From NCBI GenBank assembly GCA_002269645.1, contig NIVC01002303.1:1-59727 (forward strand): DNA of 59,727 bases, read 5' to 3'. The DNA is from Macrostomum lignano. Taxonomy: Eukaryota. The notes beneath the pieces are model-generated. The model ran no database searches, was not told where the DNA came from, and saw only the letters and a program-made list of their open reading frames with translations. Position numbers and translations under genes: made by a program. The first letter of the stretch is position 1. Each line of letters starts with the position of its first letter. Shown piece after piece: positions 13,425 to 58,320 of this stretch.

Positions 13425-25819
<12,395 letters not shown>

Positions 25820-27544: not shown

Positions 27545-29355
27545 ACATGACACTTTTTATGGTTGACATGACGCATCTTTTATGTTTGACATGACACTTT
27601 TTATGGTTGACATGACGCATCTTTTATGTTTGACATGACACTTTTTATGGTTGACATGACGCATCTTTTATGTTTGACATGACACTTTTTATGGTTGACA
27701 TGACACTTCTTTTATGTTTGACATGACACTTCTTTTATGTTTGACATGACACTTCTTTTATGTTTGACATGACACTTCTTTTATGTTTGACATGACACTT
27801 CTTTTATGGTTGACATGACACTTTTTATGTTTGACATGACACTTCTTTTATGTTTGACATGGCACTTCTTTTATGTTTGACATGAAGCATCTTTTATGTT
27901 TGACATGACACTTCTTTTATGTTTGACATGACACTTCTTTTATGTTTGACATGACACTTCTTTTATGTTTGACATGACACTTCTTTTATGTTTGACATGA
28001 CACTTCTTTTATGGTTGACATGACACTTTTTATGGTTGACATGACACTTCTTTTATGTTTGACATGACACTTCTTTTATGTTTGACATGACACTTCTTTT
28101 ATGTTTGACATGACACTTTTTATGGTTCACATGGCACTTCTTTTATGTTTGACATGAAGCATCTTTTATGTTCGACATGACACTTCTTTTATGTTTGACA
28201 TGAAGCATCTTTTATGTTTGACATGACACTTCTTTTATGTTTGACATGACACTTCTTTTATGTTTGACATGACACTTCTTTTATGTTTGACATGACGCAT
28301 CTTTTATGTTTGACATGACACTTCTTTTATGTTTGACATGGCACTTCATTTATGTTTGACATGAAGCATCTTTTATGTTCGACATGACACTTCTTTTATG
28401 TTTGACATGACACTTCTTTTATGTTTGACATGAAGCATCTTTTATGTTTGACATGACACTTCTTTTATGTTTGACATGACACTTCTTTTATGTTTGACAT
28501 GACGCTTCTTTTATGTTTGACATGACACTTCTTTTATGTTTGACATGACACTTCTTTTATGTTTGACATGACACTTATTTTATGTTTGACATGACGCATC
28601 TTTTATGTTTGACATGACACTTCTTTTATATTTGACATGACACTTCTTTTATGTTTGACATGACACTTCTTTTATGTTTGACATGACACTTATTTTATGT
28701 TTGACATGACGCATCTTTTATGTTTGACATGACGCATCTTTTATGTTTGACATGACACTTCTTTTATGTTTGACATGACACTTCTTTTATGTTTGAAATG
28801 ACACTTCTTTTATGTTTGACATGACACTTATTTTATGTTTGACATGACGCATCTTTTATGTTTGACATGACACTTCTTTTATATTTGACATGACACTTCT
28901 TTTATGTTTGACATGACACTTCTTTTATGTTTGACATGACACTTATTTTATGTTTGACATGACGCATCTTTTATGTTTGACATGACGCATCTTTTATGTT
29001 TGACATGACACTTCTTTTATGTTTGAAATGACACTTCTTTTATGTTTGACATGACACTTATTTTATGTTTGACATGACGCATCTTTTATGTTTGACATGA
29101 CACTTCTTTTATGTTTGACATGACACTTCTTTTATGTTTGACATGACACTTCTTTTATGTTTGACATGACGCTTCTTTTATGTTTGACATGACACTTCTT
29201 TTATGGTTGACATGACACTTCTTCTATGTTTGACATGACACTTCTTTTATGGTTGACATGACACTTCTTCTATGTTTGACATGACACTTCTTCTATGTTT
29301 TAAATGACACTTCTTTTATGGTTGACATGACGCTTTTTTATGGTTTACATGACGC
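27545..29355 (+). repeat. 21/23-bp satellite upstream of copy C
   Basis: Same unit as 9598-13030; ~1.8 kb. Confidence 0.95.
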
Positions 29356-29746
29356 TTCTTTGATTCTTTTCTTTTTACGTTGAGTCTTTCTTCACTTTAA
29401 AAAAATCTTTCTAAAAAACTTACACTAATAAAATTCAAATCCAGGTTCAGTCTGTTCACATCTAGGCTGGCTTTCATCGAATCGAAGACATGAATTGAAG
29501 CACTTATCAAGTCATTTTGAGTAGAAGTAATTATCAACCACACACGGATTGATGGATAGATGGGTAAAACCACTTTTAGCATAGCGGATGGACCTGAAAA
29601 GCCTGTTCACCCAATTGCCCAATCAGAAGTCGCGAACAGTTATTAGCAGGTGATAAATCTCTCAAAATCAACTGAGCATCGAAGACTCTCTGAGCTGTCG
29701 CTCGAGCAGCCCAGTCTATACTCACTAGTCTCAGCTCTGCGGCAGC

Positions 29747-32700: not shown

Positions 32701-35700
32701 AGCCACACCCGAATCCAGCCACACCCGAATCCACCCACACACGATTCCACCCACATCCGAATCCGCCCACACCAGACAGAATCCGCCCACACCAGACAGA
32801 ATCCGCCCACACCAGACAGAATCCGCCCACACCAGACAGAATCCGCCCACACCAGACAGAATCCGCCCACACCAGACAGAATCCGCCCACACCAGACAGA
32901 ATCCGCCCACACCAGACAGAATCCGCCCACACCAGACAGAATCCGCCCACACCAGACAGAATCCACCCACACCCGAATCTCCCACACCCGAATCTCCCAC
33001 ACCCGAATCTCCCACACCCGAACCTTTAAGGAGGCTACAGTTTAGCACAGAGTCTAAAAAAAGCGTTAACAAACACAGATCAAGCGGCTGGGAGCGTACG
33101 GACCCAAGTACCAGTGGATTCAGATGGGGCTTCTGTCAACCACGCGGCTCAATCAGAATGAAAGCTGCTCTGATTCCGAGCGAGCCGTGGCCATGGAGGG
33201 CTCCATGGTGCTGGACAATGACCCGGAGGATCCGGGAGCGAGGCACCCTGCTGGACTGACGGGTCGAGTAAGAATTGCGATGTCCCAATGCCATCACGTT
33301 AGCGCGTTATGGTGCTGAAAACCAGAATGTCAGAGAGTCAAGCACGGTGCTGATATTTTGTCAAAATGCCAGGATATCAGTATGCAAATAAACAGTATGT
33401 CCGGACACCAGGTTGTCAGGATGTCATGCTATAAAGTCAAGATACTAATATGTCATTATGTTAAGATGTAGGATGCTAATTTGAGAGCATATCTTTAAGT
33501 CAGCATGCCATTTTTCAAGATGTCCTCAGGATATCAGCAACATCCTCATAGTGTACTGTCATATATCACGATGATAGTATGTCAACATGTCCCGATGGAC
33601 AGTATGTCAACATGTCACGATGGACAGTATGTCAAGATGTCCCGATAACAGTGTGTCGACATGTCCCGATGGACAGTATGCAAGATGTCTCGATGACAGT
33701 ATGTAAGTTGTCCTGATGACAGTATGCCAAGATGTCCTGATGTCAAGATGTCTCGATGACAGCATGCCAAGATTTCACGATGTCCCGATGACAGTATGCC
33801 AAGATGTCCCGATGTCAAGATGTCACGATGTCAGAGATGTCACGATGTCAAGATGTCAGGATGTCAAGATGTCACGATGTCAAGATGTCACGATGTCAGA
33901 GATGTCACGATGTCAGAGATGTCACGATGTCAGAGATGTCACGATGTCAAGATATATCGGGACATCTCTGACTGTCGTGACATCTCCAAGCGAGTTCTTC
34001 AGAGGGTAGGCCGCACAATTTCAGACAAGAGACGAGACCTACGAGGACTTCCTCAGCCAGTTCGGCAGCTGGACCGCAAACCCCCAGCAATACGGCCTCA
34101 ACGGCTTCGACACGCGTTTCGACGCGGTGACGGCGGCCGCCCTGGCCATCAACGCCACCCTGGAGCAGGGCGAGAATTACACTGCCGAGCCTGCCGACCT
34201 CGACTGCTCGAGTTTCAAAGAGAAAATCTTCGAGAACGTTCGCAGCCTGGACTTTCATGGACTTTCGGTGAGTTGCTTGTCTCCCGGTTCCATGCTTGTA
34301 AACTAAACTTTCGTTGCGAGGTTGGAATTGTTTTCAGTAGTAGCAGAAGGGTAGCGGGGCATGAAGTTGAAGATCTAGAAGTTGAAATATTACCCTACAC
34401 ATGCCTGGCCTTCGTTCAGTTGTGAGTGAGCCGCCATGCTGCGAAAAATAAGCTATATAATTAACAATTGCAAAGCAGCGCCACTCGACTACTAAGAGTA
34501 GAAATTAAAGAAAATCAAGGCAACAAACAACAATATCCGTTTGTTGGAATAAGGATGAGGTGCCTCCTAAACTAGGATAAAAGTTCAGCAGGTTGTACCG
34601 AAATGCTCAAGTGTATATAGTGTACAAGACTGCTGTAGTGTACAAGCCTGCTGTAGTGTACAAGCCTGCTGTAGTGTACAAGACTGCTGTAGTGTACAAG
34701 ACTGCTGTAGTGTACAAGACTGCTGTAGTGTACAAGACTGCTGTAGTGTACAAGACTGCTGTAGTGTACAAGACTGCTGTAGTGTACAAGACTGCTGTAG
34801 TGTACAAGACTGCTGTAGTGTACAAGCCTGCTGTAGTGTACAAGCCTGCTGTAGTGTACAATGCTTTTTTGTCATTCCTTTAACACATCACTACGGCTTG
34901 AAACTGCATCAGAAACATAAATAACAATGAATAAAGTCCCCAACTGCAGGGTCAAGTCAATTTCGATTGGAAGGGTGACAGAGAATCAACCGTTAATATT
35001 TATCAAATCCGAGGTAAAACATGGGATTAAATCTTATTCAAAATAGTAGAAATTGAAAACACGGCTTTGGCTAACTAATGTCATCCTACCCTACGAGCGT
35101 AGGTCTCAAGAGAGATTTGGTTGCAACGTACCAACCGAAGACAGGGGACACTCGCTGGATCAAATCATTATGGTTTGCAGGTACGAAACTCAAATACTGG
35201 ACCATCAGCATCCATATACTAAATGGATGCTGATGTTCTCACCCAAAAAGCCCAGTCTCCCGAGTCTCCATCAGCTCAGTCTCCCGAGTCCCCATCAGCC
35301 CAGTCTCCCGAGTCCCCATCAGCCCAGTCTCCCGAGCCCCATCAGCCCAGTCTCCCGAGCCCCATCAGCCCAGTCTCCCGAGCCCCATCAGCCCAGTCTC
35401 CCGAGCCTCACACATCAGCCCAGTCTCCCGAGCCCCCATCAGCCCAGTCTCCCGAGTCCCCATCAACCCAGTATCCCGAGTCCCCATCAGCCCAGTCTCC
35501 CGAGACCCCATCAGCGCATCTCCCACCCCGTCCCGCAGGCGGCTCGGCTCCAGTCGACTCTCCCAGAATCCTCTCAAAGCTCGTCCATGCCAGCCTCGTC
35601 AGCGCCGTGGTCTCTGGCGGCCTGTCTGCCTGCGGCGCCTGCCTCACCCTGGCCGCCATGGCGGTGAACCTGTGGTTCCGCAAGGTGCCCTACATCCGGC

Positions 35701-38266
35701 TCAGCAGCCCCATCGTGAACACCATCATCGGGCTGGGCTGCCTGCTGTGCCACGCGTCCTGCCTCATCATGACCTTCAACGCGTACATGGGAAGCCAGCT
35801 CGGACTGTGCTGGTCCCAGCTGCTCTGCCTCATCACTGGCTACTCGTGCGCCTTCGGTGGAATTCTGGCCAAGACGTGGCGAGTCCACAGAATCTTCACC
35901 AACAAGATGAGGCTGACTGTGAGTCCATCTGCACTGCAGTGCTCGTGTATAGTCAGTCCCCTGAATGACCTTGAGCCAGCCTGGTCACGCATTACCGGAT
36001 TTCAGACCATCAAGGACTGGCACCTCTGCATGGTGATTGCCGCTATTCTGCTGATGGATGCTGGACTGCTGTTGGCTCTCGGACTCCTGGATTCCCCAGC
36101 CTTGGCTGTCAAGAGACTGTCTGAGCAGGTAACAGGGTGTGCAGTGTGATTCTGTACTCTGCATTCACAAAAGACTGTCTGAGCAGGTAACAGGGCGTGC
36201 AGTGATTCTGTACTCTGCATTCACAAGAGACTGTCTGAGCAGGTAACAGGGTATGCAGTGATTCTGTACTCTGCATTCACAAGAGACTGTCTGAGCAGGT
36301 GACAGTTTGTGCAGTGATTCTGTACTCTGCACTCACAAGAGACTGTCTGAGCAGGTGACAGTGTGTGCAGTGATTCTGTACTCTGCACTCACAAGAGACT
36401 GTCTGAGCAGGTGACAGTTTGTGCAGTGATTCTGTACTCTGCATTCACAAGAGACTGTCTGAGCTGTAACAGGGTGTGCAGTGATTCTGTACTCTGCATT
36501 CACAACAGACTGTCTGAGCAGGTAACAGGGTGTGCAGTGATTCTGTACTCTGCATTCACAAGAGACTGTCTGAGCAGGTGACAGGGTGTGCAGTGATTCT
36601 GTACTCTGCATTCACAAGAGACTGTCTGAGCAGGTAACAGGGTGTGCAGTGATTCTGTACTCTGCACTCACAAGAGACTGTCTGAGCAGGTAACAGGGTG
36701 TGCAGTGATTCTGTACTCTGCATTCACAAGAGACTGTCTGAGCAGGTAACAGGGTGTGCAGTGATTCTGTACTCTGCACTCACAAGAGACTGTCTGAGCA
36801 GGTAACAGGGTGTGCAGTGATTCTGTACTCTGCACTCACAAGAGACTGTCTGAGCAGGTAACAGGGTGTGCAGTGATTCTGTACTCTGCATTCACAACAG
36901 ACTGTCTGAGCAGGTAACAGGGTGTGCAGTGATTCTGTACTGTGCATTCACAAGAGACTGTCTGAGCAGGTAACAGGGTGTGTAGTGATTCTGTACTCTG
37001 CATTCACAAGAGACTGTCTGAGCAGGTAACAGGGTGTGCAGTGTGATTCTGTACTCTGCATTCACAAGAGACTGTCTGAGCAGGTGACAGGGTGTGCAGT
37101 GTGATTCTGTACTCTGCATTCACAAGAGACTGTCTGAGCAGGTAACAGGGTGTGCAGTGATTCTGTACTCTGCATTCACAAGAGACTGTCTGAGCAGGTG
37201 ACAGTTTGTGCAGTGTGATTTCTGACATTGCACTGACATTCCACTGACATGCAGTGCCATGCCAATGCAGGACATGATCTCTGACGGAGCTGTGGTTCTG
37301 CACAAGCTGGTCGTGTGTCAGTCCAGCAGCGAGGTGCTGTGGAAGGGCCTCATCATCGGCATGAAGGCGGTGTTCCTTCTGTTCGGAATCTTCTTTGCCT
37401 GGGAGACTCGCACAATTCACGTGGAAGCGCTGAACGACTCGAAGGTGATCGGAATCTGCGTGTACAACACCACCGTGATGGGGCTGATCGGCGTGGTGCT
37501 GGAGTTTGCGCTGCCCATCGGCTCGGTGGACCTGCGACTCGTGCTGCTGACCTGCTGCATCAACATCTGCTCAGCCACCACCGTGCTGCTGGTGTTTGGC
37601 AGGAAGGTCGGTGGTCAGGGTGTGAGGTGGGGTATGGGCTGGAGTGTGGGTTGGGGTGTGGGTTAGGATGTGTGCTGGAGTGTGGGATGTGGGCTGGGTG
37701 TGGGATGTGTGTTGGAGTGTGGGATGTGTGCTGGAGTATGGGATGTGTGCTGGAGTGTGGGCTGGAGTGTGGGTTGGGGTGTGCACTTGAGTGTGGGTTC
37801 GGGTGTGGGCTTGAGTGTGGGTTGGAGTGTGGGCTGGAGTGTGGGTTGGAGTGTGGGCTGGAGTGTGGGCTAGAGTGTGGGCTGGAGTGTGGGCTGGGGT
37901 TGCTGGGGTGTGGGCTGGGGTGTGGGCTGTGGGCTGGGGTGTGGGCTCTAGAGCGGACTGCAAGTTTTGGTAATTAGTGCAAGTTAGCAATTTTGTTTTC
38001 GAGTTACCAGCGCTACTTACCTAAATTTGTATTACTTTCTGATGAGGTCTAGGCTGGAGGCTTAGCTTACGAGACATTGTGAATCTCAGGCGCTTCGCAG
38101 CCCCATCGGACATCCGGACTAAATCGAATTCCAGGTGCTGACCATCCTCAAAGACCGACGCGTCAGAGTCGCCGACGCCAACACGGTGCTGAGGACGGTG
38201 TGCAACAATGACCCCAACGGGACTGGGCGAGTCAACACGGCTAGAAATGAGTCTCTTGAAATGTGA
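29747..38266 (+). CDS. Class C GPCR, GABA-B-receptor-like, copy C (complete, 13 exons, ~749 aa)
   Basis: Exons: 29747-29968, 30647-30787, 30910-31077, 31556-31654, 31746-31820, 33079-33267, 34025-34267, 34950-35013, 35103-35180, 35539-35918, 36006-36128, 37271-37606, 38135-38266. Exon lengths match B, except exon 1 is 12 nt shorter. Confidence 0.93.
30775..30880 (+). repeat. Exon 2-donor 32-bp repeat, copy C (only ~3 units)
   Basis: Same unit as 14846-18190. Confidence 0.93.
31101..31465. mobile_element. Small degenerate Tc1/mariner-type MITE in intron 3 of C
   Basis: Insertion absent from B. Left end TA|CAGTGTGGCGCTTAAGTAACTGAACAA; right end TTGTTCAGTTACTCAATGCACCACCCGGTG (imperfect inverted repeat). 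Confidence 0.5.
31828..33022 (+). repeat. Compound C-rich minisatellite, intron 5 of C
   Basis: Blocks of 14-, 16- and 24-bp units, plus a new 20-bp unit (GAATCCGCCCACACCAGACA, ~32760-32950). Confidence 0.95.
36110..37215 (+). repeat. 56/58-bp exon 11-donor minisatellite, copy C (~19 units)
   Basis: Same unit as 5281-7060. Confidence 0.95.
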
Positions 38267-39482
38267 CTCCCTGCGAACTCGCTTCTTGAAAGTTTCAATT
38301 CCGAACTGGATTTTCTGACTGATCAGAACATGCCTACTTGATTAAGCCAGAGGCTACCAATATTAATAAGCCAGAGGCTACCAATATTAATAAGCCACTG
38401 GATTTGGCGAAAGCCTCCCTACCCCCTAACTGCCCGTGGCTTGTTTTTGACAAAGAAAAAGTATAGCAAAACGACGAAAGCAAAACTTTATCCCTGTGGA
38501 CGCTCTCTGATGCAGGAGCCACTTATTGAGAAATATAACCAAGCCAATTTTGAGTTTTGACTTTGTTCTTGTTAAAATGGTCGAAAGAGAAAACGGGTGG
38601 TGCGTGGGGTTGGGCCTGGGAAAGTGTTGTGTGGGTAGGAGGGGTGTGTTGGTAGTGGGAGGGGGTTGGCAGTGGGAGGGTGTTGTGTGTGTGTGTGGAG
38701 TTGGCACATGGGAGGGTTTTGTGTGGGAGGGGGTTGGCAGTGGGAGGGTGTTGTGTGTGTGTGTGGAGTTGGCACATGGGAGGGTTTTGTGTGGGAGGGG
38801 GTTGGCTGTGGGAGGGTGTTGTGTGTGTGTGTGTGGAGTTGGCACATGGGAGGGTTTTGTGTGGGAGGGGTTGGCAGTGGGAGGGTGTTATGTGTGGGGG
38901 TTTTTTGTGGGGTTGTTGTGCGGGGCGCTTGGCAGTGAGAGGGTGTTTGTTGCCAATCCATGGGGGTTAGTGTGTGGGGTCGGCAGGGGTGGTTGGCAGT
39001 AGCACAGTATGCGAGTGCAGAAGTGATATTGAAACACTGGCACGGCTCCTAACTTCTAATCAATGTTTCTGATCAGCTTCCGCTCGTTTCTGACGCATTT
39101 TGCGTGCTCGAGGTCGCTAATTGCTTTCAAACCGCCATGGTTCAAAGCATGAATGTCTTTGACAGCCCGGATTGTTTTTACTGATCAGTTTCGTGACTGT
39201 TTCTTCTCCTTGACTGCTCAAAGGGAGTCTTAAATGAAAAAAAATATTGCTTCCAAGGTTGGGTCAGGTCGTTTCACGTTGCAGTTTTCCTTTTCAGGGC
39301 CGTGTGTGCCTTCGAAGAAACCTCTGCTCGCAAACTGTAGCGAAGTCCAATAAATGAGGCATGAAGGCAGCAGTTCTTTTTGTTTTGACTTTGTGTAGCA
39401 GTTTTCCGCGTGGAAAAGTTTGGCTTGAGAAAGCTCGCACCGGTAAATAGAGCAAGGACCACTAGAAGAAGAAGGACGGGAC

Positions 39483-40465
39483 GGGTCCACCCCAACTGCC
39501 AGCCGGAAAACTGCCAGCCGACAACTGCCAGCCGACAACTGCCAGTCGACAACTGCCAGCCGACAACTGCCAGCCGACAACTGCCAGCCGACAACTGCCA
39601 GTCGACAACTGCCAGCCGACAACTGCCAGCCGACAACTGCCAGTCGACAACTGCCAGCCGACAACTGCCAGCCGACAATTGCCAGTCGACAATTGCCAGC
39701 CGACAAGTTCTAGCTAATTGAATATACTGTAGCCTACTTATTAGCTAAGTAAAAAGCACGAAACTGTTTGGCTAGCAAAAGGCTTGTGGGGTAGCCTTAA
39801 ATGTCGCCCTTCCCTACCCTAATTTTTTCAGATTTCCATTAGAAGTATATGTGAAGGAGAAAGCATTCTGTAATGCCTATTGTAAATATTTCTGTATTGA
39901 AAGTTTATTTACTTTATTATTTAATTTGCGATTGCGATTGCTATATGACGCAATCCTAGATAAGTCTATTAAATTACTTTACTTAAATAAAGCTTTCAAA
40001 GAAAGAGCAAAGGCAACCTAAAAATATACGAAATTTGAATGCTTTCTCCTTCACATATATATACTTCCAATGGAAATCTGAAAAAATTAGGGACGAAGGG
40101 AAGGGCGACATTTAAGGCTACCCCACAAGCCTTTTGCTAGCCAAACAGTTTCGTGCTTTTTACTTAGCTAATAAGTAGGCTACAGTAGATTCAATTAGCT
40201 AGAACTTGTCGGCTGGCAGTTGTCGGCTGGCAGATTTCTCGGCTGGCAGATTTCTCGGCTGGCAATTGTCGATTGGCAATTGTCGACTGGCAGTTGTCGG
40301 CTGGCAGTTTTCCGGCTGGCAGTTTTCTCAGCTGGCAATTGTCGGCTGGCAATTGTCGGCTGGCAGTTGTCGGCTGGCAGTTGTCGACTGGCAATTGTCG
40401 GCTGGCAGTTTTCCGGCTGGCAATTGTCGGCTGGCAGTTTTCCGGCTGGCAGTTGGGGTGCTCCC
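39483..40465. mobile_element. Foldback / Mutator-like non-autonomous element with ~390-430-bp internally repetitive TIRs and a 9-bp TSD
   Basis: GGACGGGAC occurs directly at 39474-39482 and 40466-40474. Termini GGGTCCACCCC...GGGGTGCTCCC. Arms 39483-~39868 and ~40037-40465 are reverse complements, each with a 14-bp subrepeat (ACAACTGCCAGCCG). AT-rich spacer, no transposase. Confidence 0.85.
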
Positions 40466-40747
40466 GGACGGGACACTTCGTTTCTTGGAAAATTTATTAA
40501 AGGCTGATTTTCACGGAAAAATGCACTAGCGAGATAGGAACTTTTCACTTTTTTCACTTTAAAATGGTGATAGCTTTTTATTGGAAGCAGATACAAAGCT
40601 CTTCTTTTGATATAACTTACAAAACATGTTGCTTCAACGGATTTTATAAAGATTTTTTACAATTAATTGATCTTCATATTATTTTATTTTAGTTACTAGC
40701 TATATCATGCAGCAATTATAGTTTAAAGCTAACTAGTGACTAACTTG

Positions 40748-41000
40748 AATTTTACAATATCTTTTTAGTCGAATGTATCTATTTATTAGCAATATATCAT
40801 TATAAAAACAGTTGGCTATAATTATATGCCGAATTCACTGCTTATTCATTTTAGTTTTATACTTTTCATATAAAATAAGTATTTAATTATGTAGCTATAC
40901 CTTAGCTATACTAGCTATGCATTTAATTATAGCCAACTGTTTTTATAATGATATATTGCTAATAAATAGATACATTCGACTAAAAAGATATTGTAAAATT
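40748..41000. repeat. Perfect 77-bp inverted repeat with a ~100-bp AT-rich spacer
   Basis: 40748-40824 is the exact reverse complement of 40924-41000. Confidence 0.9.
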
Positions 41001-42360
41001 GTCGCTTCTTCTTTTTCAGGTGGGGTGGGTGTGGTGATCCAGCGTAGCTAGCATAGGCTGCTCCTGGGATCCCCTCTTAGTCAGTTAGTGCTTGGGCTGC
41101 AGCAGTGGGAGCTGGGCATAGGGCTGTCCCTTCCTCCCCTTCCCTTGTGCAGGCTCAGGTGTGCAGCTGTCGCGGGACAGGGAGAGAAACTCTCTCCCCC
41201 TCTCCCCCTGGCGCAGTCTGCAATGGGCTAAAAATAGAAACATTAGTCAGTGGGATATTTCTCCTTTAGTACAGGCTTATTTAGTCAGCGGGAGTGAGAG
41301 CATAGCTCTCCGCCCGGGGTAGGATTTCGTGGGGTCTTGGTTGCACTCCTTGCATGCGGCAACATGCAAGCAGTGTACCAGCAGGCCATGCGGAGGCTGC
41401 ATGATGAGGCAGATGTCTTATGGACATCTCCAAGATCGCTCCTGGCTCCGGGTAGTCCACGGAACTGCCATGGGATCTGCCACGGAACTGCCTCTGAGCT
41501 TCCCATTGGCCCTGAGACCCCCGAATTTTAGTATAAATACAGAGTAGGTGAAGGCCCAAAGAGACCATCTTTTCGGAGACCGCCTGCTTGGCTTCGAGCA
41601 AAGGCTAGTATTCCTAGATGCTTTTCCTAGACGAACTAGCTTAGGCAGATCGCTAGACGCTTTTCCTAGGGATAACCTGCTAACAAATCTTTGTTGCAGC
41701 TGCCATTTGCTCATTAAGATTGCCGCAGGTCTTTGTGTCAGCAGCTCGCCAGACCTTCAACACCGTCTGGACCTGGTCTCGTGGCCTACAACCTACACTG
41801 TTGGGCAACATCAACTGACGCACAGTACAGCTTAGGGCGTTTACTGCGACACCAGTTGAGCTACTAAACGATATTTTAGGATCGGCCTGTGACCGTTACT
41901 CACATTAATAAACGTTTAACTGACTTGTTTGTCTTATTTATTTTCTACTTATCAGTAGGCCTACCTAGGGGTAACCTGTCGAGGATATCACCTGTAGACC
42001 TACAAGGTGGCAGCAACCCAACTACCAATACTCGGTTATTATCTAACTGTACTCAGTGGAGACTAAGAGGGGTTAATTCGGACCATAGTGCTAGACCACT
42101 CAGGCCAGCTACCGGCCGTGCTAGATAGCGAGGACAGACAGAGGAAGTAGTAGGCAACAGCAGTAATCACCAAAGAGACGGGGATCCACAAGGCCATTAC
42201 ATTGGTTACATTGGTGGGATTCGGCACCAGCATTACATTGGTGGCAGCGGAGAGCAGTAGGCACAGCCATCACTCTGGTGGCAGCGGTGGGATAACAAGA
42301 CCTACCCGACCACCCAGGGAAATCCTTGTTCTATCTCGGGCGAAAGCCACGGCATAACAG
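41000..42360. mobile_element. Possible LTR-like / retroelement-derived insertion
   Basis: Non-coding, unrelated to the other spacers. Starts TGTCGC, with GCGACA near 41850, a TATAAATA at ~41532 and AATAAA at ~41907. No TSD or second LTR found. Confidence 0.3.
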
Positions 42361-42473
42361 AAGCCACTAAACATACGGGCCAATTGGTTAAAGTGTCATA
42401 TTTAAAAAATTCATTTTGTTAATTATGACCGAAATTAAAGTTAATTTTTTGTAAAACTATCATAACATGTCAG

Positions 42474-45400
42474 CAACAGAACATCGGCGCTGCTCTGAAG
42501 GCATTTGTTGACGGCTACCTCAGCGGCAGCAACAAGGCGCTGATGCTGGGCGCCAGCTTCTCGCAGCAGTCTCAGGTCATTGCTGAGCTGGCCCGCTACT
42601 ACTGTGTGACTCAGGTGAGAGCCTGTGGCTAAACTGTGACTCAGGTGAGAGACTGTGGCTAAGCTGTGTGACTCAGGTGAGAGACTGTGACTAAGCTGTG
42701 TGACTCAGGTGAGAGACTGTGACTAAACTGTGTGACTCAGGTGAGAGACTGTGGCTAAGCTGTGTGACTCAGGTGAGAGACTGTGACTAAACTGTGTGAC
42801 TCAGGTGAGAGACTGTGACTAAACTGTGTGACTCAGGAGAGAGATTGTGGCTAAACTGTGTGACTCAGGAGAGAGACTGTGACTAAACTGTGTGACTCAG
42901 GTGAGAGACTGTGGCTAAACTGTGTGACTCAGGAGAGAGATTGTGGCTAAACTGTGTGACTCAGGAGAGAGACTGTGACTAAACTGTGTGACTCAGGTGA
43001 GAGACTGAGGCTAGACTGTGTGACTCAGGTGAGAGACTGAGGCTAAACTGTGTGACTCAGGTGAGAGACTGAGGCTAAACTGTGTGACTCAGGAGAGAGA
43101 CTGTGACTAAACTGTGTGACTCAGGTGAGAGACTGTGACTAAACTGTGTGACTCAGGTGAGAGACTGTGGCTAAACTGTGTGACTCAGGTGAGAGACTGT
43201 GGCTAAACTGTGTGACTCAGGTGAGAGACTGTGGCTAAACTGTGTGACTCAGGTGAGAGACTGTGAATAAACTGTGTGACTCAGGTGAGAGACTGTGGCT
43301 AAACTGTGTGACTCAGGTGAGAGACTGTGGCTACTGTGTGACTCAGGTGAGAGACTGTGGCTAAACTGTGTGACTCAGGTGAGAGACTGTGGCTAAACTG
43401 TGTGACTCAGGTGAGAGACTGTGGCTAAACTGTGTGACTCAGGTGAGAGACTGAGGCTAAACTGTGTGACTGAGGTGAGAGACTGTGACTAAACTGTGTG
43501 ACTCAGGTGAGAGACTGTGGCTAAACTGTGTGACTCAGGAGAGAGACTGTGGCTAAGCTGTGTGACTCAGGTGAGAGACTGTGGCTAAGCTGTGTGACTC
43601 AGGTGAGAGACTGTGGCTAAGCTGTGTGACTCAGGTGAGAGACTGTGGCTAAACTGTGTGACTCAGGTGAGAGACTGCGGCTGATGAATATCTAATTTTT
43701 GTGGAAATCTATTACTCACACTCCAGATTGGCTTGAACCCCTCACCGGATCTAAGCGACAGGACCAGGTATCCGTACTACTTCCGCATGGCAACTACTCT
43801 CGGCATCAGCGTAGCGCCAGTAGTCGCCATGACAAGAGAATTCGGGTGGAAGACGATAGGTCTGATAGTGCAAGATTACGCCGCCTTTTTGTCAGTGAGT
43901 TGCTCATTACTCCACTATTAGTAGGCAAGTCTGCATGCTCAACACTATTTTTACTCGGCCTATGTCTGAACCTGCAGGTAACCTGCAGGCACAATGTCAC
44001 CGTGACAAAAGCGGGCTATACTACCGACCCCACCGTTGCCCTGTCTAGCTTGCTGGTGAGATGAAATCTGCTATAAATTTATTGTCAGTTTGTGTATTAA
44101 TAACCGTAATTGGTTTGCAAACATATATTGTCACTTTTAGAAGAAAGATCTTCGAATTTTCGTTGCCATTCGGGCGATGTTAGTGGAGGACTCCAAAAAA
44201 AGACTGGACTGCGTGGTGAGAGTTCCTTCTCGGATAAGGGGTTTACCAGCTCGAAATTTTACAACTCGAAGTTTCACCAGCTCAAAGCCTTTTTGTCAAC
44301 TGTTTGAGCATTCTTCTCATGCAGATTAAACAGCTGGGTGCCTACGGGCCCAAGTACCAGTGGATTCAGATTGGGTTGCCCGCTACAACTCGACTGGATC
44401 TGCCGAATTCCGGTTGTCAAGATTCCGACCGACTCGTTGCTATGGAGGGCTCCATGGAGACGGACAACGATATTGACGATCCAACTGCCGAGCACGAGAT
44501 TGGGATCACAGGACAGGTGGGTAAAATTTCCCTACACTGTTGCTTACATGAGAATACTTTGTAGATTTGTTCTGGTGTGACAACTGGCACTGAGCCATGC
44601 AGTGTTATCACAGCTGGCACCCAGTGTTATCACAGCTGGCACCCAGTGTTATCACAGCTGGCACCCAGTGTTATCACAGCTGGCACCCAGTGTTATCACA
44701 GCTGGCACCCAGTGTTATCACAGCTGGCACCCAGTGTTATCACAGCTGGCCCCAGTGTTATCACAGCTGGCACCCAGTGTTATCACAGCTGGCACCCAGT
44801 GTTATCACAGCTGGCACCCAGTGTTATCACAGCTGGCACCCAGTGTTATCACAGCTGGCACCCAGTGTTATCACAGCTGGCACCCAGTGTTATCATAGCT
44901 GGCCCCCAGTGTCATCACAGCTGGCACCCAGTGTTATCATAGCTGGCCCCCAGTGTCATCACAGCTGACACCCAGAGGCCAACAAAAAGCACAAAATCCA
45001 ATGACCCTCCCGCAGACAAGAGAAGAATTATTCGAGGATTTTATGCGACTGCACGGCAAGGAGACGGTGGACCCAGAGCAAACTGGCACTGTTGGATTCG
45101 ATCTGCGGTTCGATGCAATTTCTGCAGTTGCCATGGCGATCAACAGCACCCTGGCAGTTGAGAACTACGCCTCCGATCCTATTGACTTGAACTGCAGCGA
45201 CTTCAAGGACCAAGTCTTCAACAGTGTGCGGAGTCTCGACTTCAATGGTCTGTCGGTAAGCGGAACCGTTTCCATTGCTCGGAGCGAATCAACCCAGACA
45301 ACCCAGACAACCCAGACAACCCAGGCAACCCAGGCAACCCAGACAACCCAGACAAACCAGACAACCCAGACAACCCAGACAACCCAGGCAACGCAGACAA

Positions 45401-48400
45401 CCCAGGAAACCCAGACAGCCCAGGCAACCCAGACAACCCAGGCAACCCAGACAACCCAGACAACCCAGGCAACCCAGAGCCTACAAGCGAGCCTCGCATA
45501 GGGTTCACTTGTAGTGCAATTCACGCAAATTCTCATCAACCCTCAAGACACAGAGTGTACATAACCTACGATGAGATTCAGGGCCACTGTACACCCTGCG
45601 TGAGTGCTCAGGGTTCAGCGGAATGGGAATGGCTGTCTCACAGGCTCCCAACAGTAATTAATCCTCAATCAAGAAAGGAACTCAAAACTATTTCAGGGAC
45701 CTGTAAAGTTCAACAGCAAAGGAGAACGGGCGGCCAAAGTCCTCTTCTATCAGATTAGAGGTAAGATGCTATTCCAAAGGCATAAAATCAAAGTTTTGTC
45801 TAATGCAATTAAAACTGGTTAAGTGGAGCATCTTTTCTCTTCTCCAGCTTTGAAGAGAGATTTAGTTGCTACGTACGACCCGCTGACAGGGGACACTCGA
45901 TGGATCAAATCACCGTGGTTTGCAGGTAGGCGACTCGACTGCTTGAGATCTTAGCTCACTTCATAGACCAGTCTCCCGAGCCCCTATCAGCCCAGTCTCC
46001 CGAGCCCCCCATCAGCTCAGTCTCCCGAGCCCATCAGCCCAGTCTCCCGAGCCCCCCATCAGCCCAGTCTCCCGAGCCCTATCAGCCCAGTCTCCCGAGC
46101 CCTATCAGCCCAGTCTCCCGAGCCCCCTATCAGCCCAGTCTCTCGAGCCCTATCAGCCCAGTCTCCCGAGCCCTATCAGCCCAGTCTCCCGAGCCCCATC
46201 AGCGCATCTCCCATCCCGTTCCGCAGGCGGCTCAGCTCCAGTCGACTCTCCCAGAATCCTCTCAAAGCTCGTCCACGCCAGCCTCGTCAGCGCCGTGGTC
46301 TCTGGCGGCCTGTCTGCCTGCGGCGCCTGCCTCTCCCTGGCCGCCATGGCGGTGAACCTGTGGTTCCGCAAGGTGCCCTACATCCGGCTCAGCAGCCCCA
46401 TCGTGAACACCATCATCGGACTGGGCTGCCTCCTGTGCCACGCGTCCTGCCTCATCATGACCTTCAACGCGTACATGGGAAGCCAGCTCGGATTGTGCTG
46501 GTCCCAGCTGCTCTGCCTCATCACTGGCTACTCGTGCGCCTTCGGTGGAATTCTGGCCAAGACGTGGCGAGTCCACAGAATCTTCACCAACAAGATGAGG
46601 CTGACTGTGAGTCCATCTGCACTGCAGTGCTCGTGTATCGTCAGTCCCCTGAATGACCTTGAGCCAGCCTGGTCACGCATTACCGGATTTCAGACCATCA
46701 AGGACTGGCACCTCTGCATGGTGATTGCCGCTATTCTGCTGATGGATGCTGGACTGCTGCTGGCTCTCGGACTCCTGGATTCACCAGCCTTGGCTGTCAA
46801 GAGACTGTCTGAGCAGGTAACAGGGTGTGCAGTGATTCTGTAATCTGCATTCACAAGAGACTGTCTGAGCAGGTAACAGGTTGTGCAGTGATTCTGTACT
46901 CTGCATTCACAAGAGACTGTCTGAGCAGGTAACAGGGTGTGCAGTGTGATTCTGTACTGTGCATTCACAAGAGACTGTCTGAGCAGGTAACAGGGTGTGC
47001 AGTGTGATTCTGTACTCTGCATTCACAAGAGACTGTCTGAGCAGGTAACAGGGTGTGCAGTGTGATTCTGTACTCTGCATTCACAAGAGACTGTCTGAGC
47101 AGGTGACAGGGTGTGCAGTGATTCTGTACTCTGCATTCACAAGAGACTGTCTGAGCAGGTAACAGGGTGTGCAGTGTGATTCTGTACTCTGCATTCACAA
47201 GAGACTGTCTGAGCGGTAACAGGGTGTGCAGTGATTCTGTACTCTGCATTCACAAGAGACTGTCTGAGCAGGTAACAGGGTGTGCAGTGATTCTGTCCTC
47301 TGCATTCACAAGAGACTGTCTGAGCAGGTGACAGGGTGTGCAGTGTGATTCTGTACTCTGCACTCACAAGAGACTGTCTGAGCAGGTAACAGGGTGTGCA
47401 GTGTGATTCTGTACTGTGCATTCACAAGAGACTGTCTGAGCAGGTGACAGGGTGTGCAGTGTGATTCTGTACTCTGCATTCACAAGAGACTGTCTGAGCA
47501 GGGAACAGGGTGTGCAGTGTGATTCTGTACTCTGCATTCACAAGAGACTGTCTGAGCAGGTAACAGGGTGTGCAGTGATTCTGTACTCTGCATTCACAAG
47601 AGACTGTCTGAGCAGGTAACAGGGTGTGCAGTGATTCTGTACTCTACATTCACAAGAGACTGTCTGAGCAGGTAACAGGGTGTGCAGTGATTCTGTACTC
47701 TGCATTCACAAGAGACTGTCTGAGCAGGTAACAGGGTGTGCAGTGATTCTGTACTCTGCACTCACAAGAGACTGTCTGAGCAGGTAACAGGGTGTGCAGT
47801 GATTCTGTACTCTGCATTCACAAGAGACTGTCTGAGCAGGTGACAGTTTGTGCAGTGTGATTTCTGACATTGCACTGACATTCCACTGACATGCAGTGCC
47901 ATGCCAATGCAGGACATGATCTCTGACGGAGCTGTGGTTCTGCACAAGCTGGTCGTGTGTCAGTCCAGCAGCGAGGTGCTGTGGAAGGGCCTCATCATCG
48001 GCATGAAGGCGGTGTTCCTTCTGTTCGGAATCTTCTTTGCCTGGGAGACTCGCACAATTCACGTGGAAGCGCTGAACGACTCGAAGGTGATCGGAATCTG
48101 CGTGTACAACACCACCGTGATGGGGCTGATCGGCGTGGTGCTGGAGTTTGCGCTGCCCATCGGCTCGGTGGACCTGCGACTCGTGCTGCTGACCTGCTGC
48201 ATCAACATCTGCTCAGCCACCACCGTGCTGCTGGTGTTTGGCGGGAAGGTCGGTGGTCAGGGTGTGGGGTGTGGGTTAGGGTGTGGGTTGGGATGTGTGC
48301 TGGAGTGTGGGCTTGAGTGTGGGCTGAGGTGTGGGCTGGAGTGTTGGTTGGGGTGTGGGCTAAGGTGTGGACTGGAGTGTGGGCTGAGGTGTGGGCTGGA

Positions 48401-49082
48401 GTGTTGGCTTGGGTGTGGGGTATGGAATGTGGGCTAAGGTGTGGGCTTGAGTGTGGGCTGGGGTGTGGGCTGGAGTGTGGGCTGGTGTGGGTTGAGGTGT
48501 GTGCTGGGGTGTGGGCAGCAGTGACGGCAGCAGTGACGGCAGTAGTGTAGGAGGGTGGTACGAAACCAGCGTCCACGTCGCGCCCCTGGACACCCCGCCA
48601 ATGTGGCAGGAGCTCCGTGCGATCCTGCCATCGACGGGGTGACGAATTGGTCTCACATCCGGGTATACAGTCTGGGGGAGCTGTCCCGCCGGGACCCGGG
48701 TCCCCTCGCTTTCTGGCCACTCTCTGCAGGCCGCAAATTGGACTCCACCGTCTACTGTCCGCCCGCACGGAGTCAGCGCTTTGGCTGCATGGTGCTAGAC
48801 ACCCGGTCCTATTGGCTAGCCAGAATGACCGCGACCCGAAGAAGAAGAAGAAGCAGTATGGGAAGCAGTATGGGAAGCAGTGTGGGAAGCAGTGTGGGAA
48901 GCAATGTGGGCAGTGCAGTGAGGGCAGCAGTGATGTCGCTTAGACTTCCTGAATTAGTTCCGCCCGCATCCTGACAGGTGTTGACCATCCTGAAGGACAG
49001 GAGCGTCAGGGTGGCGGACGCCAGTGCGGTCATGCAGTCGAGGCAACCAACTACTGGATATGAACATCGCAGCGGGGAATGA
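42474..49082 (+). CDS. Class C GPCR, GABA-B-receptor-like, copy D (divergent VFT; exons 2-13; exon 1 not found)
   Basis: Exons: 42474-42614, 43727-43894, 43978-44055, 44141-44215, 44325-44516, 45016-45255, 45697-45760, 45848-45925, 46227-46606, 46694-46816, 47913-48248, 48978-49082 (stop TGA). The frame stays open throughout. Intron positions and phases match B/C. Confidence 0.87.
42602..43680 (+). repeat. Exon 2-donor 30/32-bp minisatellite, copy D (~34 units)
   Basis: Same unit as in B and C. Confidence 0.95.
44595..44970 (+). repeat. 22-bp minisatellite (CACCCAGTGTTATCACAGCTGG), intron 6 of D
   Basis: Unrelated to the GATGTC repeat in the equivalent intron of A-C. Confidence 0.95.
45295..45478 (+). 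repeat. 9-bp repeat (ACAACCCAG), intron 7 of D
   Basis: Unrelated to the 18-bp repeat in intron 7 of A-C. Confidence 0.93.
46798..47855 (+). repeat. 56/58-bp exon 11-donor minisatellite, copy D (~18 units)
   Basis: Same unit as in A-C. Confidence 0.95.
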
Positions 49083-49711: not shown

Positions 49712-51277
49712 GGAGACGAGAGGGACAGGGCGTGAGGTGGGTGCTTAAAGAAAGAAAGGAATAGGGTGGGTGTGATAAAATAGAGAAGAGAGACGAGAGG
49801 GACAGAGCGTGAGGTGGGTGCTTAAAGAAAGAAAGGAATAGGGTGGGTGTAATGAAATAGAGAAGAGAGACGAGAGGGACAGGGCGTGAGGTGGGTGCTT
49901 AAAGAAAGAAAGGAATAGGGTGGGTGTGATAAAATAGAGAAGAGAGACGAGAGGGACAGGGCGTGAGGTGGGTGCTTAAAGAAAGAAAGGAATAGGGTGG
50001 GTGTGATAAAATAGAGAAGAGAGACGAGAGGGACAGGGCGTGAGGTGGGTGCTTAAAGAAAGAAAGGAATAGGGTGGGTGTGATAAAATAGAGAAGAGAG
50101 ACGAGAGGGACAGGGCGTAAGGTGGGTGCTTAAAGAAAGAAAGGAATAGGGTGGGTGTGATAAAATAGAGAAGAGAGACGAGAGGGACAGAGCGTGAGGT
50201 GAGTGCTTAAATAAAGAAAGGAATAGAGTGGGTGTAATAAAATAGAGAAGAGAGACGAGAGGGACAGGGCGTGAGGTGGGTGCTTAAATAAAGAAAGGAA
50301 TAGGGTGGGTGTGATAAAATAGAGAAGAGAGACGAGAGGGACAGGGCATGAGGTGGGTGCTTAAAGAAAGAAAGGAATAGGGTGGGTGTGATAAAATAGA
50401 GAAGAGAGACGAGAGGGACAGGGCGTGAGGTGGGTGCTTAAAGAAAGAAAGGAATAGGGTGGGTGTGATAAAATAGAGAAGAGAGACGAGAGGGACAGAG
50501 CGTGAGGTGGGTGCTTAAATAAAGAAAGGAATAGAGTGGGTGTAATAAAATAGAGAAGAGAGTCGAGAGGGACAGGGCGTGAGGTGGGTGCTTAAAGAAA
50601 GAAAGGAATAGGGTGGGTGTGATAAAATAGAGAAGAGAGACGAGAGGGACAGGGCGTGAGGTGGGTGCTTAAAGAAAGAAAGGAATAGGGTGGGTGTGAT
50701 AAAATAGAGAAGAGAGACGAGAGGGACAGGGCGTGAGGTGGGTGCTTAAAGAAAGAAAGGAATAGGGTGGGTGTGATAAAATAGAGAAGAGAGACGAGAG
50801 GGACAGGGCGTAAGGTGGGTGCTTAAAGAAAGAAAGGAATAGGGTGGGTGTGATAAAATAGAGAAGAGAGACGAGAGGGACAGAGCGTGAGGTGAGTGCT
50901 TAAATAAAGAAAGGAATAGAGTGGGTGTAATAAAATAGAGAAGAGAGACGAGAGGGACAGGGCGTGAGGTGGGTGCTTAAATAAAGAAAGGAATAGGGTG
51001 GGTGTGATAAAATAGAGAAGAGAGACGAGAGGGACAGGGCATGAGGTGGGTGCTTAAAGAAAGAAAGGAATAGGGTGGGTGTGATAAAATAGAGAAGAGA
51101 GACGAGAGGGACAGGGCGTGAGGTGGGTGCTTAAAGAAAGAAAGGAATAGGGTGGGTGTGATAAAATAGAGAAGAGAGACGAGAGGGACAGAGCGTGAGG
51201 TGGGTGCTTAAATAAAGAAAGGAATAGAGTGGGTGTAATAAAATAGAGAAGAGAGTCGAGAGGGACAGGGCGTGAGG
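49712..51277 (+). repeat. 77-bp purine-rich minisatellite (~20 units) with a 693-bp (9-unit) higher-order duplication
   Basis: GTGCTTAAAG recurs at 49741 and 49818. Diagnostic variants recur 693 bp apart (CGTAAGG ~50116/50809; GAGTCGAG ~50561/51254). Confidence 0.95.
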
Positions 51278-51441
51278 TATTTTACTTTAGAAAGAATCTA
51301 CCCCTATTTACCATATTCTTTTCTCCCAATCTTCAAAATCTAGGATCCCAATCAGAGAGAGCAGGTCGACCAGATAGAAACATTTTCAAGCTCGCGGAGA
51401 ACACCCAGGAAGCGACATAGCTATCAAGTTTTCCCCGATGG

Positions 51442-57984: not shown

Positions 57985-58320
57985 TCATGAGTACAGGCCA
58001 GCCTTGAATCCCTCCTCCAGGCCGGAGATCTCGGAGATCAAATCCGAGATGGCGTGATTGAAGGCGTCCTGCGGCAGATAGTCTGGCACAGTCTGCACCC
58101 GGATCATGACGCGGAATTCCATCGGATGCGGCATCTTGTAGCCGGCGAAAATTACGCCGGGGTCTTTGAGCAGCTGCGTGGTGAGCAGGTTGCCCAGGGT
58201 GTGATCCTCCTTGTTGATGATGAACAGGGCCGCGTTGGGCACTTTGGTGTCGCGCTGCATCACGACTTTCTTCTGGCCTTCTTCTAGTAGGAATGACTCC
58301 CAGGGCTGGGGCGCGTTCAT
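57985..58320 (-). CDS. RPB11: DNA-directed RNA polymerase II subunit RPB11 (POLR2J orthologue-like), 111 aa, intronless CDS
   Basis: [12 protein letters not shown]...[39 protein letters not shown]...[20 protein letters not shown] matches the RPB11 consensus. The true start is the ATG at 58320, not the longer ORF start at 58392. Confidence 0.93.

Follow-up and report, generated by a model that had tools for sequence, protein, structure and literature searches.

A class C GPCR gene in a Macrostomum lignano cluster is a mosaic, probably overwritten in two internal patches by ectopic gene conversion

Main

The window, which is the whole 59,727-nucleotide stretch of Macrostomum lignano DNA that was analysed, contains four GABA-B-like class C GPCR genes in a head-to-tail cluster, named A to D, of which A is partial. 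Comparison of these copies confirmed that D is a mosaic, in which a 7TM domain nearly identical to that of the other copies is joined to a VFT that has diverged far from theirs. The pattern of similarity suggests that D is an old paralogue in which two internal patches have probably been overwritten by ectopic gene conversion with A/B/C copies.

The best database matches of the cluster genes are M. lignano class C GPCR entries, and searches against Pfam identified both ANF_receptor and 7tm_3 in B and in D. The 7tm_3 domain (PF00003) was matched with E = 2e-39 in B and 3e-39 in D. ANF_receptor (PF01094) was matched over profile positions 6-350 in B (E = 2e-35) and over positions 39-344 only in D (E = 1e-22), the shorter match reflecting the absence of exon 1 from D. 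NCD3G, the cysteine-rich linker between VFT and 7TM, gave no match at E <= 0.001; likewise, in GABA-B receptor subunits, which are class C GPCRs without a cysteine-rich domain, the VFT (ANF_receptor) is joined directly to 7tm_3. Outside flatworms, the best named relatives are annotated 'GABA-B receptor subunit 2-like' and share only ~30-36% identity with the cluster genes in the 7TM. Unlike GABA-B subunits, which bind GABA and heterodimerize through a C-terminal coiled coil, the cluster genes form a lineage-specific tandem expansion and have a short tail after TM7 (~45 residues in B, ~35 in D). These relationships are best explained if A, B and C are young tandem duplicates and D, lying just outside the duplication, is an old paralogue of the same subfamily.

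Gene structure of copy D

Exon models for D were rebuilt independently and match those of an earlier, sequence-only reading of this DNA. Exons 2-13 (42474-49082) form an intact open frame of 655 codons with GT-AG introns, and most introns contain minisatellite arrays. Several of these arrays are built from an exon end together with the 5′ splice site, such that the splice donor is duplicated: each 32-mer in intron 2 includes the final 14 nt of exon 2 and each 56-mer in intron 11 the final 19 nt of exon 11, in both cases together with the GT donor. The features of D are as follows.

42474..42614, + strand: exon 2 (141 nt; acceptor and donor read), with boundary 1 at 42503/42504
42504..43682, + strand: patch 1, putatively converted; exon 2 from nt 31 on (111 nt) and the 32-mer array of intron 2
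42601..43682, + strand: intron 2 minisatellite, 32-mer x 34 (TRF)
43683..45967, + strand: D-type VFT block, anciently diverged; exons 3-9 and their introns
43727-43894, 43990-44055 and 44141-44215, + strand: exons 3, 4 and 5
44325-44516 and 45016-45255, + strand: exons 6 and 7
44600..44975, + strand: D-specific 22-mer array in intron 6, unrelated to the intron 6 array of A/B/C
45290..45478, + strand: D-specific 9-mer array in intron 7, unrelated to the intron 7 array of A/B/C
45697-45760 and 45848-45925, + strand: exons 8 and 9
45968..46212, + strand: intron 9 minisatellite, 23/24-mer x 10, containing boundary 3
46190..48455, + strand: patch 2, the putatively converted 7TM cassette; last intron 9 array unit through most of the intron 12 array
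46227..46606, + strand: exon 10 (380 nt; TM1-TM3)
46607..46693, + strand: intron 10 (87 nt), the same sequence in A, B and D
46694..46816, + strand: exon 11 (123 nt)
46798..47862, + strand: intron 11 minisatellite, 56-mer x 19
47913..48248, + strand: exon 12 (336 nt; TM5-TM7), identical to that of A and B
48265..48516, + strand: intron 12 GT-rich 12-mer array, with boundary 4 at ~48455
48517..49082, + strand: D-specific remainder of intron 12 and diverged exon 13 (48978-49082, ending at the stop codon)

No exon 1 was found for D by tblastn at E <= 10 or in an open reading frame listing over 38.9-42.5 kb, an absence that the sequence-only reading does not mention. Because exon 1 is absent, D may be an incomplete gene or a pseudogene, even though its 12 exons give an open frame. 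If read-through transcripts splice exon 1 of an upstream copy onto exon 2 of D, D could still be expressed within a multi-gene unit.

Near-identical and diverged segments of D

The homologues of the two patches in the other copies lie at the following positions.

14718..18219, + strand: copy B exon 2 and intron 2 with its 32-mer array x 105, homologous to patch 1
23814..25298, + strand: copy B 7TM cassette, homologous to patch 2 (A equivalent 4696-7466, C equivalent 35525-37619)

Patch 2 starts with the last unit of the intron 9 array, runs through exons 10, 11 and 12 with intron 10 and the 56-mer array between them, and takes in the greater part of the array in intron 12. Its unique parts are 98.1-100% identical to those of A, B and C, with no indels. 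Across the 839 nt of exons 10, 11 and 12 (380 + 123 + 336), D and B differ at 3 + 1 + 0 = 4 positions, in agreement with the earlier estimate of about four, and Ks between them is 0.009. The 87-nt intron 10, described previously as shared, is identical in D, A and B (0/87 differences between D and B), and C carries one private change. In the 7TM, D is as near to A, B and C as those copies are among themselves, and two derived sites are common to D and B.

Exon 2 changes character within its own length. Eight differences between D and B fall in nt 1-30 and none in nt 31-141 (Fisher p = 2e-6), consistent with the sequence-only reading, which had taken most of exon 2 and its array as near-identical; the 32-mer array is indeed common to D, B and C. 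Patch 1 as a whole is 94-98% identical to B 14730-15916, and 70% of the 32-mer unit types of D are also found in B. Distances between 32-mer units are equal within and between arrays, and the unit pools of both the 32-mer and the 56-mer are undifferentiated between loci. Copy numbers vary, with 34 copies of the 32-mer in D versus 105 and 3 in other copies, and 19 copies of the 56-mer in D versus 32, 9 and 20. The shared blocks of D carry 4 private substitutions in 585 nt.

By contrast, the VFT part of D is strongly diverged. In exons 3-7, 143 of 246 amino acids are identical between D and B (58%), with Ks ~2.0 and Ka/Ks 0.17, and the earlier count of 33/56 for exon 3 was reproduced exactly. 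Only exons can be aligned in the D-type VFT block, at 60-75% nucleotide identity; introns 3-8, noted before as unalignable, have no detectable DNA similarity to those of A, B or C. Exon 13 is diverged, as reported earlier (16/34 amino acids identical), and no homology to A/B/C was found in intron 1 of D or in its 3′ flank. A database search with the VFT of D returned no D-like VFT elsewhere, the only matches being to the shared exon 2.

The significance of this contrast was assessed by Fisher tests on all sites and on synonymous sites. A GENECONV-style permutation, which drew only on the polymorphic sites of three sequences, yielded no information, since such sites are almost absent from the converted region. 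Synonymous differences between B and D number 2 of 214 sites in exons 10-12 versus 119 of 171 in exons 3-7 (Fisher p ~1e-54), a ~200-fold difference in synonymous divergence within one gene. At the amino-acid level, B and D are 59% identical in the VFT and 99.3% in the 7TM. The outgroup paralogue P0004, used as a baseline, shows similar divergence in the two domains (46% in the VFT, 50% in the 7TM). Within the VFT, B and C share 93% of their amino acids, and D stands apart at 59%.

A homogenized 7TM in all four copies

The near-identity of the 7TM extends to all four copies, an observation that is absent from the sequence-only reading. Blocks S6 and S7 are 98.1-100% identical without indels in 6 of 6 pairs of A, B, C and D; outside these blocks, identity is 95-97% for A-B and 75-97% for B-C (7TM versus flanks: A-B, p = 9e-10; B-C, p = 2e-17). 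Copy C also has a diverged patch of its own.

34455..35248, + strand: diverged patch of copy C; 3′ part of intron 7, exons 8-9 and 5′ part of intron 9

Identity between B and C is 75-77% inside this patch versus 96-99% on either side, and Ks is 0.52 inside versus 0.02 outside. The patch ends at the same intron 9 array as that of D, and C and D each have their own proximal junction. GC3 is 0.83 in exons 10-12 versus 0.60-0.67 in the VFT, a modest excess (z ~3) that could partly reflect codon usage; in the control paralogue it is 0.72 in the 7TM and 0.74 in the VFT.

Patch boundaries and the proposed conversion events

Boundary 1 (42503/42504) lies within exon 2, outside any array. Boundary 2 falls in the 32-mer array or at its end, no farther than 43682; the distal junction of this array in D has a different repeat phase from that in B and C and is flanked by unrelated sequence. 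Boundary 3 is in the intron 9 array, in which all units of D except the last are private variants. Boundary 4 (~48455) is in the GT-rich array, ~60 nt before its end, where colinearity with A/B stops. The earlier count of three of four boundaries at or inside arrays therefore stands; however, boundary 3 is probably at the 3′ end of its array (~46190) rather than at its start (45970). Diverged D-type sequence flanks each patch on both sides, and the patches are therefore internal, as produced by conversion or double exchange.

The signatures observed here are those of gene conversion: near-identical synonymous and intron sites in one sub-region with saturation elsewhere, relationships that depend on region, an internal tract and a modestly raised GC3. 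In the scheme that we favour, one conversion would have covered ~1.2 kb, made up of the intron 2 array together with the final 111 nt of exon 2, and another ~2.3 kb, beginning at the 3′ end of the array in intron 9, stopping within that of intron 12 and taking in exons 10-12 and with them the whole 7TM domain. The second event would be part of an ongoing homogenization of the 7TM cassette in all four copies, one that would postdate the A/B duplication and of which the raised GC3 may be a trace. Transfer would presumably have been into D, a direction that is tentative at best for the 7TM block. The patches may end in arrays because repair synthesis or heteroduplex could be resolved only there: the arrays fill most of those introns and would be the sole long stretches still similar between D and A/B/C. 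The VFT exons of D and exons 8-9 of C are best explained as old, lineage-specific sequence kept under purifying selection.

Alternative origins of the mosaic

In class C GPCRs the 7TM domain is usually under the strongest constraint, and purifying selection alone might have kept it identical while the VFT drifted. This explanation is refuted, because conservation is as high at synonymous sites and in intron 10 as at replacement sites. The sequence-only reading had allowed that both might prove as diverged as the VFT; they are not (Ks 0.009; 0/87 D-B differences). Conservation extends to the intron arrays, and in comparison with P0004 the 7TM is no better conserved than the VFT. A chimeric gene could arise by unequal crossing-over (non-allelic homologous recombination) if an A/B/C-type copy recombined with a diverged paralogue, and the cluster offers tandem, same-orientation copies with long shared arrays able to misalign. 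However, one crossover would leave a whole side of the gene A/B/C-like, and in D the D-type sequence returns after patch 1 (VFT) and again after patch 2 (intron 12, exon 13 and 3′ flank). Four crossovers would be required, which amount in effect to two conversion-like patches, and we consider this origin decidedly unlikely. It is highly improbable that the mosaic arose during assembly, by the stitching of A/B/C reads into a diverged D locus through the shared arrays. Junctions that all lie in repeats would favour such an artefact, as would the character of the published M. lignano assembly, a repeat-rich, partly redundant one in which simple and tandem repeats account for 15% and chromosomes are duplicated (PMC5730564). 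Yet four switches would be needed, each returning to the same locus in the right order and orientation, and the reading frame is kept across every junction. An assembly chimera is unlikely because the shared blocks of D carry private substitutions and a private array structure, with their own units and copy numbers.

The sequence-only reading went further and attributed the mosaic to gene conversion or unequal exchange seeded at shared minisatellites. Recent non-reciprocal exchange is borne out by our analysis; seeding is not established. Under a model in which shared intron arrays initiate or anchor recombination, and unique DNA between two arrays is copied as a cassette, patch ends should lie in arrays, and three of the four ends in D and one of the two in C do so. 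The patches of C and D both stop in the same intron 9 array despite separate proximal junctions, patch 1 is ~90% array with a short spill into exon 2, and the 32-mer and 56-mer pools are undifferentiated between loci. In addition, D and A/B/C have different outer array junctions, and beyond its colinear part D retains private 24-mer units and a further ~60 nt of GT repeats. These distinct junctions and private units fit endpoints inside pre-existing arrays, a fit that is no proof of cause. Arrays, however, make up 48.6% of 42474-49082 and 0.96, 0.81 and 0.35 of introns 2, 9 and 12, so the placement of boundaries in arrays is consistent with chance (three or more of four in D, p = 0.29; four or more of six with the two patch ends of C included, p = 0.32), and these few boundaries show no enrichment beyond it. 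Boundary 1 and the left boundary of C lie outside arrays, and repeated endings in intron 9 would be just as likely under simple selection against conversions that reach into the VFT. The second cluster of the same family, the only other one examined, is also mosaic, although its two genes have no intron arrays in common. Guidance by minisatellites is thus possible but doubtful, whereas ectopic conversion itself remains the probable explanation. In a search for a core motif common to the arrays, shared 7-mers were in excess and nothing was found at 8- or 9-mers; the excess was taken as compositional.

Discussion

The events proposed here would homogenize rather than diversify. What is exchanged is the 7TM together with the 3′ portion of exon 2, and not the variable VFT; since the module that moves is the conserved one, the description of the locus as a repeat-guided module-swapping system for receptor diversification was an over-reach. 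All four copies are affected, and D lacks exon 1. In the second cluster, similarity is lowest (72%) in the 3′ half of the 7TM; this cluster, having neither a constant 7TM nor common arrays, provides no support for a general rule.

The cluster is a very clean case of regional concerted evolution among invertebrate class C GPCR genes. Its 7TM exons report conversion history instead of gene history and are therefore unfit for Macrostomum family trees or orthology. Intron minisatellites keep their intron positions between paralogues that have lost all recognizable similarity in unique DNA. It is conceivable, although we regard it as unlikely, that such arrays are the only usable homology for ectopic repair, thereby enabling exchange of the 7TM cassette among genes too diverged to recombine by other means, and fixing module boundaries at introns. 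With arrays in most introns, several of which duplicate the splice donor, the locus is suited to asking whether minisatellites shape conversion tracts. We found nothing specific in the literature on gene conversion in Macrostomum or on minisatellite-bounded conversion between paralogues.

Regional gene conversion is clear in this cluster but of a familiar kind, and the window alone points to no new mechanism. The closest analogue is provided by the clustered protocadherins of fugu and zebrafish, for which regional gene conversion has been described (PMC1852091; Noonan et al. 2004 cited there). In fugu, the 3′, membrane-proximal part shows >99% nucleotide identity, including at synonymous sites, the 5′ recognition part is diverged and GC3 is raised (PMC1852091). 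The teleost clusters and the present one are both arrays of tandem receptor paralogues with the same split between near-identical and diverged parts and the same rise in GC3. The protocadherins belong to another receptor family in another phylum, and their tract lies inside one large variable exon with no intron arrays involved, whereas the tract in D covers three exons together with a unique intron and an intron minisatellite of 1 kb, and ends in minisatellites.

Human minisatellites of the MS32 type are hot spots of meiotic recombination and conversion, with tracts that extend a short distance from the array into the unique DNA beside it. Patch 1, with its array and 111 nt of exon 2, resembles such tracts; MS32-type events, however, occur between alleles of a single locus, whereas the exchange considered here would be between paralogous genes. 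In antigenic variation, as with the 70-bp repeats of trypanosome VSG genes and with Borrelia vlsE, repeats mark the ends of a copied segment, and a variable cassette is copied from silent donors into an expression site, somatically or clonally. The D cluster shares with these systems the repeats at the ends of the copied segment. It differs in that no variable module is copied from donors into an expressed site, as in a programmed, diversity-generating cassette exchange; instead, a conserved module appears to have been homogenized in the germ line, with no sign of silent donors or programmed initiation.

A tandem cluster of GABA-B-like receptor genes

The window is eukaryotic DNA with a very high minisatellite content over its 59.7 kb; for M. 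lignano, 15% simple and tandem repeats have been reported (PMC5730564). Four gene copies, A to D, are arranged head to tail on the + strand, with arrays in nearly all of their long introns.

Copy A, + strand: partial, begins within the intron 5 array; frameshifts in exons 6 and 7
Copy B, + strand: intact, 753 codons
Copy C, + strand: intact, 749 codons
Copy D, + strand: exon 2 to exon 13, 655 intact codons

The top protein-database matches of the translated conserved exons are Macrostomum lignano class C GPCR entries. The best reaches only 91% identity overall despite identical local stretches, because these entries are frame-shifted transcript models. Next come 'GABA-B receptor subunit 2-like' proteins of molluscs, cnidarians and echinoderms (~30-36% identity). 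A Pfam search identified ANF_receptor and 7tm_3 and found no cysteine-rich linker; by domain content, the predicted proteins are GABA-B-like class C GPCRs. The indels in exons 6-7 of copy A (1066-1257, 1890-2128) disrupt its reading frame and reflect either a pseudogene or long-read indel errors. An apparently intron-less RNA polymerase II Rpb11-like gene lies at 57985-58320 on the - strand (RNA_pol_L_2, E = 1e-26).

Copy D is a mosaic of two levels of divergence

The sequence-only reading described D as a patchwork of a constant membrane-spanning half (7TM, exons 10-12) and a diverged ligand-binding half (VFT). An independent exon model of D, based on its splice sites and open frame, reproduced the exon numbering and lengths of that reading, whose counts were also recovered: 4 differences from B over the 839 nt of exons 10-12, an 87-nt intron 10 identical in D, A and B, and 33/56 identical amino acids in exon 3. 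With arrays masked, D aligned with A, B and C at 92-94% in exon 2, weakly (60-80%) in exons 3-9, at 98-100% in two blocks (46213-46816 and 47858-48264) and at 79% over 56 nt of exon 13, and nowhere else. Nei-Gojobori estimates between B and D are Ks ~2.0 and Ka 0.34 for exons 3-7 versus Ks 0.009 and Ka 0.003 for exons 10-12, a synonymous contrast that far exceeds chance (Fisher p ~1e-54) and confirms the mosaic.

The near-identical sequence forms two patches, both of which involve intron arrays; across the copies, the 32-mer and 56-mer arrays lie at:

14845-18190, 32-mer array
30774-30880, 32-mer array
42601-43682, 32-mer array
5281-7061, 56-mer array
24399-24896, 56-mer array
36110-37215, 56-mer array
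46798-47862, 56-mer array

Patch 1 extends from 42504 through the intron 2 32-mer array; D exon 2 differs from B at 8 of its first 30 nt and at none of the other 111. In this array, 70% of unit types are common to B, and unit distances within arrays equal those between arrays. At its distal end D stops in another repeat phase than B and C, and the last 44 nt of D intron 2 are unrelated to theirs. Patch 2 reaches from the intron 9 array to within that of intron 12. The unique DNA from exon 9 to the intron 9 array differs among three lineages (A/B, C and D), and the D array holds private unit variants except for its last unit, which is B's last unit; near-identity therefore probably begins at ~46190. 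From there it takes in exons 10 and 11 with the intron between them, the 56-mer array (with no differentiation of its unit pool between loci), exon 12 and the GT-rich intron 12 array, where D is colinear with A and B until ~48455; ~60 nt more of GT repeats then precede D-specific sequence.

The 32-mer and 56-mer units themselves contain the final 14 or 19 nt of the preceding exon together with the GT donor (ACTCAG/GTGAGA; GAGCAG/GTAACA), so that the 5′ splice site of an intron recurs in tandem within it, 3 to ~105 times. Arrays in introns 5 and 12 begin a few nucleotides from the donor, and that of intron 9 ends just short of the acceptor. Introns 6 and 7 carry arrays in D (44600-44975, 45290-45478) and in A/B/C (20084-20670, 22475-22629) with unrelated repeat units, which suggests that arrays have repeatedly arisen or turned over at these intron positions.

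The 7TM cassette is homogenised across the cluster

The near-identical 7TM is not peculiar to D but common to all four copies: its unique parts are 98.1-100% identical, with zero indels, in 6/6 copy pairs. Outside this block, identity is 95-97% for A-B and 75% to 97% for B-C. The A-B difference between 7TM and flanks (p = 9e-10), together with the near-identity in all pairs, indicates that the cassette was homogenised cluster-wide after the youngest duplication. GC3 is 0.83 for exons 10-12 and 0.60-0.67 for those of the VFT; both halves of P0004, an outgroup paralogue outside the window, have ~0.72-0.74. In fugu protocadherins, such a raised GC3 served as an argument that conversion has recurred (PMC1852091).

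Copy C contains an old diverged patch of its own at 34455-35248 (exons 8-9 with the adjoining 3′ portion of intron 7 and 5′ portion of intron 9), with a B-C Ks of 0.52 and 75-77% nucleotide identity, compared with Ks 0.02 in exon 7 and exons 10-12 and 96-99% identity in the flanking blocks. Exon 9 of C ends ...GGTTTGCAG, matching D, whereas A and B end ...GGTTCGAGG. An intron 7 insertion of ~1.3 kb in A (2571-3437) and B (21381-22272), absent from C and D, has an edge coinciding with the left end of the C patch; with its inverted ORFs and an HTH_29 match that is weak and below threshold, it is probably a DNA-transposon remnant.

The 5′ end of D and read-through between copies

A tblastn search with the exon 1 peptide of B and C found no D exon 1 in the stretch that separates copy C from D exon 2 (38300-42473). 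The exon without counterpart in D encodes the signal peptide and first ~78 VFT residues, and the D ANF_receptor match begins at profile position 39. Homology 5′ of D ends within exon 2, and sequence 5′ of 42486 is unrelated to B/C intron 1. Copy D may be either 5′-truncated or dependent on trans-splicing or read-through from C; in M. lignano, spliced-leader trans-splicing is widespread and precursor transcripts are polycistronic (PMC5730564). In UniRef M. lignano transcript-derived models (comparison with P0001, P0003 and P0007), exon 13 of a copy is connected to exon 2 or exon 1 of the following copy, in one case through a small intergenic exon, which indicates read-through transcription across the tandem genes. 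The stretches concerned are:

7879-8010
8741-8842
14718-14858
25688-25819
26666-26761

Two inverted 14-mer arrays between C and D form a palindrome of ~960 bp (39493-40455), followed by a second of ~250 bp (40748-41000); the transcript model P0002 ends within the first 14-mer array. Very long intergenic arrays occupy 9637-13039, 27544-29361 and 49713-51278; intergenic repeats include a 23-mer (×151 and ×80) 5′ of exon 1 in B and in C, and a 77-mer (×20) 3′ of D.

Origin of the mosaic

D-type sequence resumes past both patches, which makes them internal, a pattern that a single unequal crossover does not leave; they are best taken as conversions, or double exchanges with equal outcome. Protein-level selection cannot account for the constant 7TM, since it cannot fix synonymous sites, an intron and intron arrays. 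Moreover, divergence from the more distant P0004 is much the same in VFT and 7TM (46% and 50% amino-acid identity), so an unconverted D 7TM would be expected to be ~60% identical to B; 99.3% was observed. An assembly chimera retains a small residual probability: it needs four switches, each back to the same locus and in order, and the shared blocks of D differ from the other copies by four substitutions and by array variants present in D alone, and have copy numbers of their own. The conversion proposed in the sequence-only reading is thus supported, while its guidance by arrays is unproven and a diversification system unsupported.

That reading placed three of four boundaries at or inside arrays, and three of the four D patch ends do fall in them, as does one of the two C patch ends. 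However, arrays make up 48.6% of the D span (96% of intron 2, 81% of intron 9, 35% of intron 12), and neither at least 3/4 ends (p = 0.29) nor at least 4/6 with C included (p = 0.32) exceeds chance; the statistics do not support array guidance. A recurring intron 9 boundary is equally expected if selection purges conversions entering the VFT. The lineage-specific outer array junctions, and the private units past the colinear part, are as endpoints inside arrays already in D would leave, and patch 1, which apart from a short stretch of exon 2 is almost entirely array, fits such an endpoint. Paralogue unique DNA is ~35% diverged, leaving arrays as the only long similar stretches for resolving a repair intermediate; resolution within them is mechanistically reasonable. 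In the one other cluster of this family that was retrieved, a tandem pair (P0005, P0004) on contig NIVC01001840.1, assembly GCA_002269645.1 (loci L002 / L001), the two genes are also mosaic (69-91% identity by block), similarity is lowest in the 3′ half of the 7TM, and no intron arrays common to the two were found. We therefore consider a causal role of minisatellites possible but rather doubtful. Annotation of both genes starts only at the 'MEGS...' exon; upstream VFT exons were seen by tblastn, so the public models are 5′-truncated.

Comparison with known systems

The cluster is a very clean case of regional conversion in an unusual genome, and the locus is suited to testing the role of minisatellites in conversion. 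All features of regional gene conversion that we examined are present. In teleost clustered protocadherins, likewise, the 3′ and membrane-proximal parts are identical and the recognition parts have diverged, with GC3 raised (PMC1852091). Programmed cassette-exchange systems are defined by copying of the variable module, which this cluster lacks: contrary to the proposed module-swapping system for receptor diversification, the part exchanged here is the constant one, and the outcome is homogenisation.
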